Origin: Auanema rhodensis
Lineage: Eukaryota; Animalia; Nematoda
DNA length: 64,000 bases
Direction: 5' to 3'
Assembly: GCA_964057225.1 (NCBI GenBank)
Contig: OZ059898.1
Span: forward strand, 12,152,001 to 12,216,000
A program made the translations under genes and the position numbers. The notes under the pieces are model-generated. The model worked only from the letters and a program-made list of their open reading frames with translations. It searched no databases and was not told where the DNA came from. Numbering within the stretch: position 1 is the first letter of the stretch; each line of letters starts with the position of its first letter. Shown here in pieces: positions 49,969 to 58,439 of this stretch.

Positions 49969-52900
49969 TCAATTGCGGGAATGATCAATTAAAGTATGTG
50001 AGTAAGTGCCAGGTTGGAACACCATTTCCAGCTGGTCAGATTCAACCTTACGTCCACCATATCTGTTTTTCAAAATCTAAAAAAAATATATAGGAGTCAG
50101 AATATTATGAAACTGCTTACATAAAGGAATTTACGGAATTTTGCCCGATCCTTATCATCTCTACGTCTTTGGATAGCCAATACATTGTCTGCTTCCTGTG
50201 TTACTCTAGCCGATCCACCAAAGTGTTGGATATCCAAGTCTGTGTCAGACTGCAAAATAGTATGTATATGTTAAAGGTAAATAGCAGGATACATCTGTCT
50301 TTCTAGGATGAACCACCATTGTTACATGAACTTGATGTTCACTAGCCATCTTCCGCATCAAACCAACAAATCGATCCTTAACACATATCAATTCGAGACG
50401 AAAATAAAATGTGAATGCTTTACTTGATGATGGAATTTCTCAAATCCACTTGAACTATCGTCAGCCATTGTGGTCTGGTTAACTAAGAATTGTAGATTAT
50501 CAATAACAACATGTTGACAACCATTATTAATAACGTGTTGACTTATAGCCTGGAGTTAGACTAAGGTTAGAAGACCAGTGAATTACTACAAACCTTTGCT
50601 ATGTCAGTAATATTTTTGTTCATAAGAAACTCATCAGTTTTCAAAATTGTTAATGGTCCCTTTGTTCGCTCAAATTTATCCAGCCAACTGTCGATAGCAC
50701 TGCTATACTCCACTCGGTACAAAGGCAGTCTATAAAACGACAGTTAGAGGTGCAATACGATGCGCTTGCAACATTCAGATCGTGAAAATGCTGGACCAAC
50801 AATATTAAAAGCAGTATTTGAGACAACAATATATCTAACATAAATTCACATCATGTTGTTCAGTTTCGAATTTTTTCACGAGTAAGCGCTTTATACGTAG
50901 AGGAAGCAACTTCATTTTTTTAAAGATTACGGTACATTGGCGCTTATTTTGTGGAAAAACACGATCTGAAGCCCATCCTTGAGCTAAGAAACTTTTATAC
51001 TTAGAAATCTAACATGCACAAGTACCGTAATCTAAAACCAAAAAGGCACAAAACATATATGGCTGCTTACTTTATCCCGTTTCTAAACGTCAATGTGCGC
51101 GCGAGGCTACGTAGATGTGACGGACTGCAGAATTAAAAGAGATATTAACTCATTTTTCTATTCCAACAAATCAAAAAGCCCAGCAATAACAAAAAAAAAT
51201 ATTAACTTACGCTGCATATTGGACTAACATCCATTTGAGAATCTTCTCTTCTGGCATTTCAAAACTACAGAACAGAGTTCGTACCTAAACACAAACAACG
51301 TAGTTGAGGTTAAATAGCGGAAAATCATACTCCTTGAGTAAAGAGATCCAGCGCATATTCGCATAAAAATGTGGTTTTTCCAAACCCAGTACCTCCTGTA
51401 AGAACCGTCAGCTCACCTGGACGGAAACCAAGAAGATATTTATTGAGAGCAGAAAACCGTTTCCACTACAATATTGCACATAATATTTAGAGACAAAGGC
51501 ACACAGTCAAACCTGAGCTAATCCGTGCTGACGACTAGTAGAGTGAATGAGATCTGCTTTTACTTCTTCTCGAATATCAGTCATGGAGCGGAAACCCTTG
51601 TCACGCATCCGCACCTACAATAAAATATTAAAAATTCTGAAATTTACAGCCACATACAGATCGGGAAGTTATAGCCTGCTTTACTTCTAAGTTCCGATTA
51701 TTACGAACCATTTCAATGGGTCTATCAGCAACTCTGAAGAAATATATTTAATGCTTATTGAACTAGATATAATTGTTTTCTCACTTCACAAGAAAACAAC
51801 GAGAAGCATTCAAGGCAGCTCCCCATTCCTTTGCATAATCCAAATGTCTGATAGGAAACCAAAGGTAAATTTGATCAAAGTCCTCTAAATAGGGAAAGAC
51901 AGAGCTGTCAACACGTTCTCCTTGAGGAAGAGCAAAAGCAAGAGCTCCATCAGTGGCTTCATAAATGGCCAGAGCATCACTGGAAGCAATAATTTCAAAA
52001 TATCAGTAATTTAATGAATTACCGTTCATTTGTTGTTAAAACTACCATTCTATCGGATGCTGTAACCATGTGATAACCGAAAATTCCACTGAACTTTGGC
52101 CTCGGTCTAAAAATATTGATGCACATTGATCGAGTAACATGAAAATATACAATGTTTCGTCGTGAAGAGGATAATTCTCTTTTTCCATCTTTGGCCCTAT
52201 TTTTCTAATTGCTTTCAATCCAGAAGGAATTCGAAGACGTGACGCAATCCCTCTATATCTGAAAGAAATCGCAGTTTTTAAAGGAACTTATTGGCTTCTA
52301 GTGAATTTAACGCTTCATAAAAAGAACCGGAAGCAAGACAGAATGTGGAGTCAAAGTGATCGATATATACCTTGAGCTACACGTGCAAGCAGTATAGGTG
52401 TTAGCCCAATGAAATGAAATTTGTGAGCCTTACCTGGGATATAGAACAGCAGGTTGATCGTAGCCATCAATATGGCCTCTAACATTATATCTCGATAATG
52501 TATCAATGGAAATTCTCTGAAACTCAAATTTAGACAACTATCACGTTTTCATCACCCACTTCGATCCCAAGCATGATCCTTAGTTGTAACATATCATTCA
52601 TTTCAAGTCCAATCATTTCCCCAATATCAACACTGTCATTCCACAGATATTTGACTTGGGGATCCGGCTGATAAGGAGCCGAGGACATGCCTCCTTCGTC
52701 AGATGACCCTCCTCCAAGAGCTCGAGGTGATGGGGCGTCCGAACTGGAAAATGAGATAAAAATGAGGTATTTTAACAGGGAAAAGAATATTTTTTGTTCT
52801 GAATTATTAGAATACGGATTTTAGGAGAGATTAAAAGGTAATATTCCTAGAAATAACTAATAAAATATATTCGTGTATATACAACAAGAGAGTTTTGAAA

Positions 52901-55900
52901 GAAATACACAGTGTTCTTTGTGAATGTTGACAAGCAGGCTTCATAATAACAATACAAGCACAATTCAGCCTGCCAAAGGAAGAAAATGCAAAGAACGGAA
53001 AGCGATTGCCGGATATGTGGCCAAAGAAATCTCAAAGAGGTATACGCCAGATTCTAAGTGAGAAAAAAAGAAAATCTCTCGTGATATTCTTGACTGGTAG
53101 TCTAAATTATTAAGCTCCGATCTATTTTCAGAACCTCGCAGCATAGAAGCCATCATCGAATGATCCGAGACTGCTATCTGTTACGGGATAGCAATCTCCT
53201 ATAGGTTGCTCGTCGTCTTCATCATGGAAGAGATTCAATTCATCGTCGGGAGTAGCTAAGTTATCGTCAAGAAATGCTTTGTCAGAATTGTCTCCGTCTT
53301 CTTCCTCTTCGACATCAGTAGTCGAGTCGTCAAAATCGACATTATACTTTTTTCGAATTTGACGAATGGGGTAATTACGAAAAACTATGTCAGAGTCGGA
53401 GTCCGAATCGAAAGGTACCTAAAAGATGTAATAGTTGTAAAGCATGAGAGCAAGAGAGAGCATGAATAACCTCTTCAGGTTCGGGTAAAATGAAGAAATC
53501 ATCTAAGTCTATCCATGTCACAGACTTCTCTTGCTTCGTTTTTTTACTTGCAGTAGGAAGTATCTTACTATAAGCTGCGGAAGGCTTAATTTATCAAAAA
53601 TAGAGTTACTTAAAGCCTTACCGTCGTGATCTGCTATGTCCGGATCATAATCCGAGCAGATCGAAGGCAAGATACCAATTTGATCTGCTGTATGGTGAGC
53701 AAAACTAGTTTTAGATCGGAAAGGAATTTTTGCAATACAGAGCAGAAAATAACAGACGAGTGCAGAATATTCAGCAGTCACTAAAAGGTCCAGTAGCTAG
53801 AAGGACCAGAAGCTATTTGCTGGAGTTACAGCCAAACAATTATAAAGCACGAAAGGCGTTGGTGTTCATATGAACACTAAATGAAAAAATCACGCCCTTG
53901 CCTCTCTTTTCTCTTGCTCTCTCCTTCGTCCTTCTATGCATGTCATGATGACTTGTGGCAACCCCAAGCGACAATTATTTCTGTTGTACCTCTCTATAGT
54001 GTATTGCACGCTGGGATTTGCACAACTCATAGATCAAGCTAACAGCTTGTTCCGCCTGGTTCGTCATCAGAAGGTATTTAAAGTCAGTGTCCACCTGCCC
54101 GATTGGCTTGAATTATATGATCTGGGTAAGATCATTCAAGTGCTACATTGAAAGACAGGAGGAAACATATATGTAAAAGTTTTTTCAGATTAGTTATATT
54201 CTATTTTAAGTCCTTCTTGAATAACAACATTGATTGAGACATTGAATTCAACAAAGAATAATGCGTAATGCATTAATATAGAAGTGCATTCCTGCAGAGT
54301 TGAGGATGGGGAAGCAATTTGAAAAAAATTTGCATTCTTCTGAACATAAACAGAGAGGTGGAAATCAAAATAAATTCGCAACCTCGATCAGCGAACTACT
54401 GTAGCGAGAAATCAGGTAATATTGTTTTTGTTGTTTTTTGGGTCATGTTTAGAAGTGGGTAGAACAACAAGCATCTCGCTTTTAGGTCTCTCCAAGAGTT
54501 TTCAATAGGGAGCAGCATGCTGCCTTACTCATGAAACGACACCCCATGGAGATACACCACCTACACCACAATAATTTATAAAGTCCCTTCAGGGTTTTCA
54601 TATAAAGTTAATATTGGATTCAAAAAAAAAGGAATGATTGAGACAAAACTTATAAATCTTCCTCAGATGCGGCTCTTGATGTAAAAGAACTTTTACCTAT
54701 CCGGACTATCAATTATTTGATGTCAAAAATTAATGAAACCGACAACAAAAAATCCACCGTAGTAAGATCCGTAAGGCTTTCTGATTTAAAGAAAAGGAGG
54801 AGCATATCAGGAAATCGGACACTTGCTTGATATGTAAAGTAAGGTTATATGCATATGAGTGTATATACGATTTTGAAAAGTAACTAGTAAATCACAGAAA
54901 GCCAAGAACATTGAATTTCTCGATTGGCCGGTCTTCAAAGAAGTAACCGGAAAGAATGAACTAAATAGAAATGAACAGATAACTTGTTGCTCACTTGAGT
55001 GCTGCAAGTATAGGATGGAAATAGCAGACGTTCTAGATTTTCTAGATAGGAAAAAAGCTTTTAATACTAGGTAGCCAAGACATTGGCATTACCTGCTTTG
55101 AGAAAGACAGACAGACAGAATCAAAAAGAGTGGGGCAGGACATATAGGTCCAGTTATACATATACGGCAGTAGAGCCTGAATACTTTCCGAAAGGAAACT
55201 AATCGAGCAAAAGAATACATGTTACTGAGAGTTTGTAGAAAGAAAAGGGCAAGAATAATCATGAATAAAGTTAAGGAAGTATACTCACAATGAAAAAGGT
55301 AAAACCTCAAATTTTGAGATTTATACAATTAAACTAGGAAATTAAAAATAATGAAATTAAAAAAACTTACTCATCTCGTACTCGCAAATGACGATCCTTT
55401 TTTTTGGAACTCATCTGATTGTACTTGGACATGAGATTCAGATAGCTGACGTTATCATATAAATCAGAATCAAACTGAAAATGTTAATAATTTCAAAACT
55501 TTCAGAACTGCTATTATGGATACGAACATCATCAGGACTCTCCATTCTTCGAAGTGTTTCTTCAATTTCCTTTTCTTCTTTTGTAGTTGTTTCGTCGTCC
55601 TTTGTTGTTTCAGTCTTTCGAACAGTTACGCGTTTCTATAAAATAAGTTCATAAACAGATTTTGTATAATTGGATTATTAGCAATATTTCAACAATTATT
55701 CTAAAGTTGTAGATAAATAGAAAAGTACTTGTTCAAACTTAGGATAAGCCATAAAGTTATTATAAGCTAGCGGAATTTAATAAATGTCAACCTAACTCTC
55801 TGTTAGGGAGTGAAGCCCAAAAGTCAGATATCTGACATAGCTGCCTATTTAAGGCTAGCATATTGAAAAGAAAATGAGCGAAATTGTTAAATTTAAGTTT

Positions 55901-58439
55901 AATATTAGATTTACCTTATCCTAATCAACGTTTTTTAATATGCAATAACTCGAAAAGAATGAATGGCCTACAGCATTGAATACTTGAAACCGTTCAATTT
56001 GTAGCAAGGATAGGGAAGCCAAAGGTTTGAGTACAATGAGGCTAAAGGTAGCAATACAGAGTAGGCTGGGCAAGACAAAGACTGAATATAAATCGTTTCC
56101 GATATGGCCTTTCCTCGTCCCCGGCTAATTTACTTGTAATAGATCTGAACCTTGATATTCTTAAAAATATACGAAATGCTGGCAACAAGATTATATAAGC
56201 TTTGCGAACATCATCGCGCACTTTAAAATTTAAATTACTTTCAAAGAAAAATGTTACTTAAATATCGAACTATACGAAATTGAACAATTATGAGTACGTT
56301 TTGAAATGCAACCGCATTGTGCATTTAGTCAAAGAAAAATGAAACGATTTTATGGAGTTACGTGAACCACGTGAACTAGAGGAAAGTTCAGACTTGGACT
56401 TCTAGTATAAGAAGAATCAAATCAACTTAAGAAACTCTGAGCAAAGTTAAAACATGGGTTAATAATAATTTTTTCGCTCAGCCAACCGAAAACAATTAGA
56501 ATCCCACATCTGCTATTGTTTCGATTATAATGATAGTTGCAGGAAGTATAAGCAACGAAGGAAGTAAAGTACAGAGTGCAAAGGTTTTCCCGGAAGACGC
56601 TAGCAATGGACGTGAAATTGTACAGTTGAAGAGCTTAACTTGATTCAATTTGAGCTTTGAACTAAACTACGCAAAGTTTACGGAGGAGAACAGATTGTTA
56701 CAATTGAGACAACTTGCATGACTGTACTATATCAAGGAAAACACAAATTGTAAAGCTTCTAGGAATATGCCAAAAGGTTGGAGATCTAACCTGACCACAT
56801 TGCCATTCCAGAACTTTGTCTAGACGATCGGTTTGAGGCTGAAGCTGCTCCCAAAATCGACGAGAAGCGAGATGGCGATCAACTTGAGCAGCATACATGG
56901 ATATGCCAGTTCAAGAAGAAACTGCCAAATTTCTTGATAGAAATTTCTTTTTATGAACCTGCTTTTAATCTCGCCAATATCCGGTTAGACTCTCAAATAA
57001 GTTTTATTCCTAAGTGTGGAGGTGTGCTAGTCGAACTTTCAAAAGCAATAGACCGGCAAAAGGTGTCAATCCCTTGTCGCAGGAAGCTAGCCTAATTAGC
57101 CGTGAAAATCTGCATGGTATTACTAAGTTGAAATAGAGTTGAACAATGAAAAAAGTCTAGCAATGGCAAGTAAAGAGGAAGGAAAAAAGAAAAAGGAATG
57201 TAAACAGCTGTAAACCTTCTCTGATCCATTTGTCGAACTAGAAGAATCAGTCGATTTTTTATTACTCATCTGATTTTCATCTGAAGAACCCTTCTCTTCA
57301 TATAAGTCATCAGCTTCTTTTTGACGATCATTAGAGCACTTTAAACAATCACGTTTCATAGCCTATCGTAAAAACTTTTGTAATATTTTCCGAAGCGAAA
57401 TTAACGAAATTAATGGACAGGTAAACGAGAGAAAAAAAACAATGAAATATATAGAAAAAAGTTATAAGCTCGTTTCAAGCTCGTTTATACTTAACATTAA
57501 AGCTATAAAAGATGGAAAAAGGGCTTAAGTAGGGGAACAAAGGACATCAGAAGGCGGGACAAGAAAAAATACTATTGAACTTTCTTTCTACGTCTGTGAG
57601 CAATATTACATTTCAAGTGGTTCTAATAGAAATGATATAAAATAGTATAGTCGCCGTCGAAGACAAAACATTTTGGTTCATAGAAGTTAGGGAAAGGTAA
57701 AGCTCATGTCATATGTCAACCAATATATGAGTGTAATTAGAGGCATTTATACTCCAAAAGCATTAATAATGAGGTACCCTTAGCTTATTGCAAAAAATAT
57801 AAATCACACATAGTCCCAGAGAGCTTTCCTTCAAAAATATTGACATCAAGATTATACCAATATGACTTATAAGCTTAGTGGTCATAATGAAGACAAATTG
57901 AAAAAAAGTTGACAGATTTTTCAGCTCAGCATTATAATTAATGAATAAGTTACTAACCTTATAATTAAGAAATGGTTGAGTAGCATCACATGATGTACAT
58001 GTCATTTGTCCATCAACCGTGGAAATCATATTGGATTGATTTGCACCACATTCCAAACAATCAGTTCGTATAAAACGACGATACTCCTGAAAAAATTGCA
58101 CATTAAAACCATAAAAACAGAAATTATTGAATTTTGAATTCTATTTTCATGTCTTGGTGTACCCGTTCAGATTAGAACATATCGATAAAGGAAATGAGTG
58201 GTAGGAATAAACTTATATAATAGTGCACCAACTTCTTCTAAAACTGATTCTTCTCTGGTTTCAGTTAACATAGATTTCCGTTCTAGATCTTTAGAAGGAG
58301 CTTGTAAAGCAGCTAAATCAACGTCTACATCATCTTCGTCGTCGGAACGTGGAACAGAAAACGAAATGGAAGAAGCATCAGAGAGGTGGCGAGAATACTG
58401 ATAATTCGAAGGCAGCCGACTGGTCTTCATTGGGGTCAT
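49969..58439 (-). CDS. twnk-1: Twinkle mitochondrial DNA helicase (SF4, T7 gp4-like); possible further exon 58651-58746
   Basis: [41 protein letters not shown] (Walker A), TLFCSFEM (H1a), [10 protein letters not shown] (Walker B), [20 protein letters not shown]; degenerate TOPRIM region; Zn-domain exon 57958-58086 (CLEC..CTSC) joined in phase via 57216-57362, 55528-55635, 55371-55474 to the exon starting at 52743. Helicase part secure, 5' joins inferred. Confidence 0.85.
53128..54560 (-). CDS. Six-exon coding chain nested on the same strand in Twinkle intron 52744-55370 (nested gene or alternative 3' end)
   Basis: Exons 54529-54560, 54383-54398, 53990-54106, 53622-53796, 53471-53574, 53128-53418 join in phase, 735 nt, with a single terminal TGA; acidic tail and KSVTW motif. 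The last two exons are strongest; the two tiny exons are weak. Confidence 0.6.

Follow-up and report, generated by a model that had tools for sequence, protein, structure and literature searches.

A coding unit within a Twinkle intron of Auanema rhodensis: a very probable E4-type alternative 5' module of twnk-1

Introduction

The window discussed here is a stretch of 64,000 nucleotides (nt) from the nematode Auanema rhodensis with a G+C content of 30.6%, and it carries the gene for the Twinkle helicase, twnk-1, on its minus strand. A 2.6-kb intron of this gene contains a coding unit on the same strand. In a preliminary description of this DNA, six pieces of the intron were joined into one chain, which was seen as a separate gene nested in or interleaved with Twinkle. 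The comparisons described below indicate that the coding unit is very probably an E4-type alternative 5' module of twnk-1 and not a separate nested gene. The module is orthologous to an isoform architecture that is already known, and its one oddity is the start codon. The feature was correctly spotted at the outset, but it was wrongly assembled and interpreted.

The Twinkle gene in the window

Similarity searches used single exons or database proteins as queries. In a Pfam scan of every exon-sized open stretch, the P-loop/DnaB match in the helicase exon (51465-51328) was the only one, and none was found for the intronic module. The Toprim exon (52002-51784) aligns with residues 267-334 of human Twinkle in a search of solved structures. 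The same search gave weak S27e-type zinc-ribbon matches only for the zinc-ribbon exon, and no match for the shared exon, which is the first exon common to both kinds of isoform. A search of the representative protein library with the Toprim exon resulted in 25 nematode Twinkle relatives, which were then compared with the window using tblastn. The genomic loci compared are labelled L003 (Diploscapter pachys), L004 (Mesorhabditis spiculigera), L005 (Gnathostoma), L006 (Oesophagostomum dentatum) and L007 (Auanema sp. JU1783). JU1783 is the closest relative of the window in the searched collections, and its locus is collinear with the window.

The distal front end of the gene ends with an exon encoding DLYD.VSYLNL (55474-55371), which shows 91% amino-acid identity in JU1783. 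Proteins from Steinernema (P0009), Gnathostoma (P0010), Pristionchus (P0011) and Oesophagostomum (P0005) match this exon and then, within a few dozen residues at most, the shared exon (52743-52560), while in C. elegans P0059 and P0073 the DLYD exon sequence stands directly N-terminal of the shared exon. The four-Cys exon 58101-57958 is also matched by P0009 and by P0014. Donor 55371 and acceptor 52743, which had been paired from the outset, are indeed both in phase 2, and judged by these homologues the splice between them is sound and the chain lies inside a Twinkle intron. It was also considered that 52743 is a mere trans-splice site, with Twinkle starting at the ATG at 52688 and the upstream exons belonging to a neighbouring gene. 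In homologues, however, the DLYD exon immediately precedes the shared exon, and the idea was rejected on that ground. In O. dentatum, a contig of 1,620 bp (KN576260.1, L006) contains an intron-less Twinkle open reading frame (ORF) of 468 codons, which is cDNA-like or retro-copied.

Coding evidence in the 2.6-kb intron

The six minus-strand pieces of the chain, N1 to N6, lie at 54560-54529, 54398-54383, 54106-53990, 53796-53622, 53574-53471 and 53418-53128. As computed from the sequence, their borders are AG/GT and their phases agree, and together they yield 244 codons followed by TGA, as described. Only the last 36 codons of N4, together with N5 and N6, hold up as coding sequence. No similarity to the collinear JU1783 locus was seen (blastn, tblastn) for N1, N2, N3 or the first 22 codons of N4, and for N1-N3 no DNA or protein similarity was found in the D. 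pachys or Mesorhabditis loci either. Many open stretches of 40-93 codons occur in this AT-rich intron, and N1 and N2 measure no more than 32 and 16 nt, so phase consistency alone is weak evidence. By this comparison, N1-N3 and the start of N4 are no more than chance gives.

The remaining part diverges from JU1783 in the manner of coding sequence. The conserved part of N4 (L007 9916-10017) shows 58% amino-acid identity with an in-frame 6-nt indel, and its differences by codon position are 12/5/17. These values are 73% and 6/5/18 for N5, and 55% and 28/20/52 for N6. The excess of differences at third positions is accompanied by ratios of nonsynonymous to synonymous divergence (dN/dS) of about 0.07-0.19 where calculable, with dS being saturated. 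The claim of a same-strand coding unit in the Twinkle intron is thereby borne out. The intron between N4 and N5 is found at the same place and in phase 1 in D. pachys. The motif ILPEPEE/VPFDSD spans the N5/N6 junction (slashes mark splice junctions throughout) and is uninterrupted in intron-less relatives; the N5 motif is identical in the window and JU1783. N6 is acidic and probably disordered (Table 1).

A profile was built from the N-terminal E4-type modules of nine other nematode species, with Auanema excluded. It matches one of the 2,003 ORF pieces in the 64-kb window, at 53590-53393, which contains N5 (E 6e-7). The module also follows the signature [KR]xVxW-ID-x-D-[DE]-[FY]-x-I-L-P-x-P-x-E-x-P-[FY]-D. 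Both it and the conserved intronic block downstream of it are single-copy in their own 181-Mb genome and are therefore neither a repeat nor a transposon.

Relatives of the module and known isoforms

Two N-terminal classes are found among the Twinkle representatives. One consists of a zinc finger plus DLYD.VSYLNL (P0005, P0009, P0010 and P0011), whereas the other is module-like (P0003 from D. pachys and P0007 from M. spiculigera). Both classes join the same downstream exon when compared with the window using tblastn. The module-like motif reads RAVSWIDANEYLILPNPNEIPFDE in P0003 and RNVRW..DIDDFLVLPPSDDE in P0007. In both species, the order of the locus is as in the window: the zinc-finger, Z3 and DLYD exons are followed by the module-like exon and then by the shared exon. 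In the window, L003, L004 and L007 alike, the module follows the DLYD exon and precedes the shared exon, with all three on one strand. No module-like sequence was detected in the equivalent 2-kb intron of Gnathostoma (L005).

A word search with P0007 found the JU1783 model P0038, which joins the module to the shared exon as predicted here. The models P0038 (GCA_943334845.2), PAV91526.1 from D. pachys and CAJ0583622.1 from M. spiculigera are orthologous module-plus-helicase models with the same donor/acceptor pair. All three are automatic models, and the annotated start of P0038 is an out-of-frame ATG that is absent from the window.

The best-described counterpart is found in C. elegans, where twnk-1 (F46G11.1) has four TWNK-1 isoforms in RefSeq. 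Two of these begin MEDELDSDLYDRVSYLNL, are 568 and 595 residues long and pass into the shared part at ..KFRDD/SDAPSPR. The other two both begin MDDYTILPSPDEAPFD, also given as MDDYTILPSPDEAPFDHSDDE.., and their specific part ends ..DFDFS/SDAPSPR. E1 (with exons 1-3) and E4 (starting at exon 4) are described as alternative-first-exon isoforms, each with a promoter of its own; their cDNAs have been cloned, their disordered N-termini differ, and their roles in learning are non-redundant (bioRxiv 10.64898/2026.06.10.731382). Like the window module, C. elegans E4 (NP_001355546/NP_001355547; P0099, P0097) lies between the DLYD.VSYLNL exon and the shared exon. Both have the same core motif, DDYTILPSPDEAPFD in C. 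elegans, and both carry an acidic disordered tract before the identical ..S/SDAPSPR junction; in both species the E4-type form coexists with an E1-type form using the same acceptor. There are also differences. The window module is longer (about 165 codons in three exons), includes [KR]xVxW and a basic N-terminal stretch, and is without an ATG. A four-Cys zinc-ribbon exon is retained in the distal front end of the window but is missing from all four of the C. elegans TWNK-1 isoforms listed here.

Transcripts are available for a strongylid. Five of its Logan contigs on record, drawn from at least three SRA runs, carry the E4-type form as a single unbroken ORF. The transcript P0041 joins the module to the equivalent shared exon (..S/LDAPSP), and the sister contig P0119 is an E1-type form with the same downstream sequence. 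In C. briggsae and C. brenneri, the models P0069, P0102 and P0113 contain both the DLYD exon and a KAVSW..DDYTILPSP module.

The human gene TWNK (Twinkle/Twinky) is like the nematode gene in that helicase isoforms arise from one gene by alternative processing. The human isoforms differ at the C-terminus via alternative splicing and not by an alternative first-exon module.

Public annotations split twnk-1 in two of these genomes, at L007 4086-8596 and 10001-13596 in JU1783 and at L003 3022-6979 and 10001-14441 in D. pachys. In each case, the result is a small zinc-finger 'gene' (215 residues in JU1783 and 245 in D. pachys) and a module-plus-helicase gene.

Tylenchid Twinkle models from Meloidogyne and Globodera (P0031, P0012 and P0047) have a different and much longer N-terminal region, ..FLFRLP..DPDEAFVVVER... 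This region replaces the DLYD front end in Meloidogyne and follows it in Globodera. It may be a distant counterpart of the module.

The junction with the shared exon

The preliminary description gave the chain an acidic tail ending in a stop at 53128. N6 is indeed acidic, but the terminal GFYAARF reads through a conserved donor (GCG AG/GTTCTGA), and 53135 is the last base of the exon, which closes on an incomplete codon of two bases (..GCT GCG AG). The first base of the shared exon completes AGT (Ser) and is followed by SDAPSPR. The AG/GTT phase-2 donor is also present in JU1783 (ACCAG/gtttaa), D. pachys (GAGAG/gttgag) and M. spiculigera (ACTAG/gttgca), and GTT donors are usual at the locus, where they also occur at 57958, 57216, 56791, 55528 and 53471. 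Across the window and these three genomes, in-frame stops follow 2, 6, 4 and 15 codons past the donor (2 in the window), and the read-through sequence is unrelated. In M. spiculigera, the intron between module and shared exon is only about 67 nt long, too little to accommodate a separate 3' end. In light of this comparison, the stop at 53128 belongs to the intron.

A second transcription start or trans-splice site would lie in the 2.6-kb intron, near 53914-53835 and the acceptor-like site at 53797. The resulting messenger RNA would consist of the conserved part of N4 (53730-53622), N5 (53574-53471), N6 (53418-53135) and the exons from 52743 onwards, with the phase-2 donor at 53135 joining the acceptor that is also used by the distal donor at 55371. 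Its product would be the full Twinkle primase-like/helicase protein, in which the presequence, zinc-finger and DLYD.VSYLNL front end is swapped for an acidic, probably disordered extension of about 165 residues.

Table 1. Coordinates of the features at the twnk-1 locus of the window
Feature	Position	Strand	Remarks
Exon 56898-56791	56791..56898	-	Conserved ATG; phase-0 GT donor
Distal-specific exon	55371..55474	-	Last E1-type exon; DLYD.VSYLNL; phase-2 donor GATGA/gtaagt
N1	54529..54560	-	32 nt; unsupported as exon
N2	54383..54398	-	16 nt; unsupported as exon
N3	53990..54106	-	Unsupported as exon
Conserved non-coding block	53835..53914	-	Directly upstream of module; 77.5% identical to L007 9731-9809
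Acceptor-like site and leader	53731..53799	-	Conserved ..aaatagct..tctag (AG 53798-53797) and 66-nt ATG-less leader
N4, conserved part	53622..53730	-	First conserved coding stretch (last 36 codons of N4); phase-1 donor GACG/gtaagg
N5	53471..53574	-	Core conserved motif exon; phase-1 acceptor, phase-0 donor
N6	53135..53418	-	94 codons and 2 nt; 29 Asp/Glu, no Met; phase-2 donor GCGAG/gttctg
Donor and intronic stop	53128..53134	-	GT 53134-53133; TGA 53130-53128, two codons past donor
Intron, module to shared exon	52744..53134	-	391 nt; conserved non-coding block 53044-52875
Shared exon	52560..52743	-	First exon common to both isoform kinds; phase-2 acceptor ttttccag/T; SDAPSPR

The start codon

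The conserved part of N4, N5 and N6 contain no in-frame ATG, and the first one in the module frame is that at 52688 in the shared exon. The JU1783 module has no in-frame ATG either. The modules of D. pachys and Mesorhabditis begin, unlike that of the window, at an ATG of their own (MTRRR..), and those of C. elegans and the strongylids begin at the Met of WID-M-DDY, which in C. elegans lies 54 residues before the shared exon. In the window, ATT 53727-53725 (context AAAATT) aligns with the ATG of the first group, while the second start position is a Leu codon (TTA). In JU1783, an in-frame TAA is found two codons before AAA ATT with no AG between them, and therefore no upstream exon can enter the module frame in this species.

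An ATG-less frame under purifying selection in both Auanema-clade genomes makes initiation at a near-cognate codon the most economical common explanation. The E4-type isoform of the Auanema lineage could possibly start translation at the conserved AUU 53727-53725, although this proposal is a tentative one, and an unrecognised upstream exon in the window or an assembly error in JU1783 would serve as alternatives. If true, the lineage as a whole would have moved one helicase isoform to non-AUG initiation, presumably so that little of it is made.

Directly before the module, the acceptor-like site and leader (53799-53731) are probably a trans-splice or 5' untranslated region (UTR) acceptor followed by an untranslated leader. 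The leader, which had been read as the first 22 codons of N4, is 66 nt long in the window and 53 nt in JU1783, and the two are unalignable as protein. Further upstream, the block 53914-53835 is without a conserved ORF, and the ATG inside it is CTG in JU1783. This block may serve the E4-type transcript as an internal promoter or as a 5' control element.

Alternative explanations

The assignment to the E4 type follows from the homologues, the synteny, the conserved donor, the C. elegans isoforms, the strongylid transcripts, the unique profile match and the coding-type divergence. It also draws on the junction in the JU1783 model P0038, the lack of any stand-alone relative among the proteins found and the single copy of the module. 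Several observations count against it. The 53135>52743 junction is a prediction based on conservation and on models and transcripts from other species. No in-frame ATG is present in the module of either the window or JU1783, and the usual definition of a first coding exon does not apply. P0003, P0007 and P0038 were all predicted automatically, and P0038 is probably wrong at its 5' end. In the window, but not in JU1783, the frame is open to the acceptor at 53797, so an upstream ATG exon could feed the module. Finally, a retained intron would yield exactly the 244-codon ending of the preliminary description.

Three other explanations have been considered, which together hold a small share of the probability. 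An independent same-strand nested gene would have its own start, the stop at 53128 and its own poly(A) site, leaving acceptor 52743 to Twinkle only. The phase-consistent chain ending in TGA agrees with this, as do the 385 nt from stop to acceptor, which fit a 3' UTR and a nematode operon-type spacer, and the splitting of the locus into two genes by the annotators of JU1783 and D. pachys. However, these split annotations place the module on the helicase rather than on a product of its own. No short stand-alone relative came up in a word search with the last exon, and every motif-bearing protein found was a Twinkle helicase. In addition, the stop lies two codons past a donor that is conserved in four genomes with unrelated read-through tails, in the C. 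elegans isoforms and the strongylid transcripts the module leads into the helicase, the M. spiculigera module is separated from the next exon by only about 67 nt, and the window module is without an ATG of its own. With all homologues found forming the N-terminus of Twinkle helicase, and with a conserved donor that fits the Twinkle acceptor, the separate gene originally proposed is very unlikely. The zinc-domain protein without helicase, suggested as another outcome, is contradicted by the same homologues, every one of which carries the Twinkle helicase.

Slightly less improbable, but still unlikely, is an internal cassette, in which a phase-0 donor (57958, 57216, 56791 or 55528) is spliced into acceptor 53797 to give a long isoform with both front ends. 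The frame in the window is open from 53796, this splice would supply the missing ATG, and the C. briggsae and C. brenneri models P0069, P0102 and P0113 do contain both front ends. On the other hand, JU1783 has the in-frame TAA two codons before the conserved part of N4 with no AG between, and the leaders differ in length (53 versus 66 nt). The modules of D. pachys and M. spiculigera have their own ATG, with the nearby acceptor out of phase with the donor of the DLYD exon. Conservation is also lacking over the first 22 codons of N4. The least probable of the three is a decaying remnant in the Auanema lineage, untranslated after loss of its ATG, in which case E4-type transcripts, if any, would start at the ATG at 52688. 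This would account for the lack of an in-frame ATG across about 165 codons in both Auanema-clade genomes, in which out-of-frame ATGs do exist. However, the frame of about 165 codons is intact in both species, with in-frame indels, an excess of third-position differences and a dN/dS well below 1, while the introns are unalignable; the core motif is identical in both. An E4-type alternative 5' module of twnk-1 is the explanation kept here.

The [KR]xVxW motif

The preliminary description pointed to KSVTW as a docking motif of the RVxF type for protein phosphatase 1 (PP1). The motif is present in the sequence, and the match to the consensus is conserved in four genera; the binding of PP1 is a separate matter. 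The aligned position reads KSVTW in both Auanema-clade genomes and KAVSW in several Caenorhabditis models, and elsewhere RAVSW, RNVRW or RRIRW. The RVxF-type docking consensus is [RK]-x(0,1)-[VI]-{P}-[FW]. KSVTW, RAVSW, RNVRW and KAVSW fit it and, as in known RVxF motifs, they lie in a disordered region with acidic residues after them. The annotated C. elegans E4 isoforms start downstream of [KR]xVxW. Twinkle is a protein of the mitochondrial matrix, unlike PP1. The best-conserved part is the following acidic stretch D-[DE]-[FY]-x-[IV]-L-P-x-P and not [KR]xVxW itself. PP1 docking through the putative [KR]xVxW motif is possible, but function could lie instead in the adjacent acidic [FY]-x-[IV]-L stretch.

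Other conserved features of the locus

The exon 56898-56791 was first described as an orphan ATG exon that could feed the chain. It is conserved as coding sequence (81% amino-acid identity with JU1783, dN/dS 0.10), but its phase-0 donor fits the Twinkle exon starting at 55635 at least equally well. An in-frame TGA lies four codons upstream with no AG between, and therefore it is not an internal coding exon. No counterpart was found in D. pachys or Mesorhabditis. Its ATG and GT donor are conserved, and it probably serves Twinkle as one more alternative first coding exon, specific to Auanema, which feeds the phase-0 acceptor of 55635-55528. Further upstream, an ATG-initiated open frame at 58227-58439 on the minus strand is coding because it shows 82% amino-acid identity in JU1783 with differences of 8/7/38 by codon position.

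In the intron between module and shared exon, a block of 170 bp (52875-53044) is 85% identical to JU1783, with a core of about 95%, and is conserved better than the flanking coding exons. The block is single-copy and matches no Rfam family, and its RNA folding (z-scores of -1.35 and -0.12) is of no unusual stability. An ORF of 45 codons on the opposite strand (52924-53061, plus strand) is also kept in JU1783. The block may act as a splicing or promoter element within the intron, or else represent a very small antisense gene. Four short intron blocks on the minus strand (57061-56977, 56115-56048, 55223-55179 and 54956-54914) are 74-82% identical to JU1783 without an obvious reading frame, and are candidate regulatory elements for the choice of 5' ends.

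Significance

The main value of this analysis is corrective: a suspected same-strand nested gene is very probably the orthologue of a known alternative-first-exon isoform of nematode Twinkle. It also draws attention to a gene that the public annotations of JU1783 and D. pachys split in two. The E4-type module carries a conserved short linear motif and is old, being present in Caenorhabditis, strongylids, Mesorhabditis, Diploscapter and Auanema.

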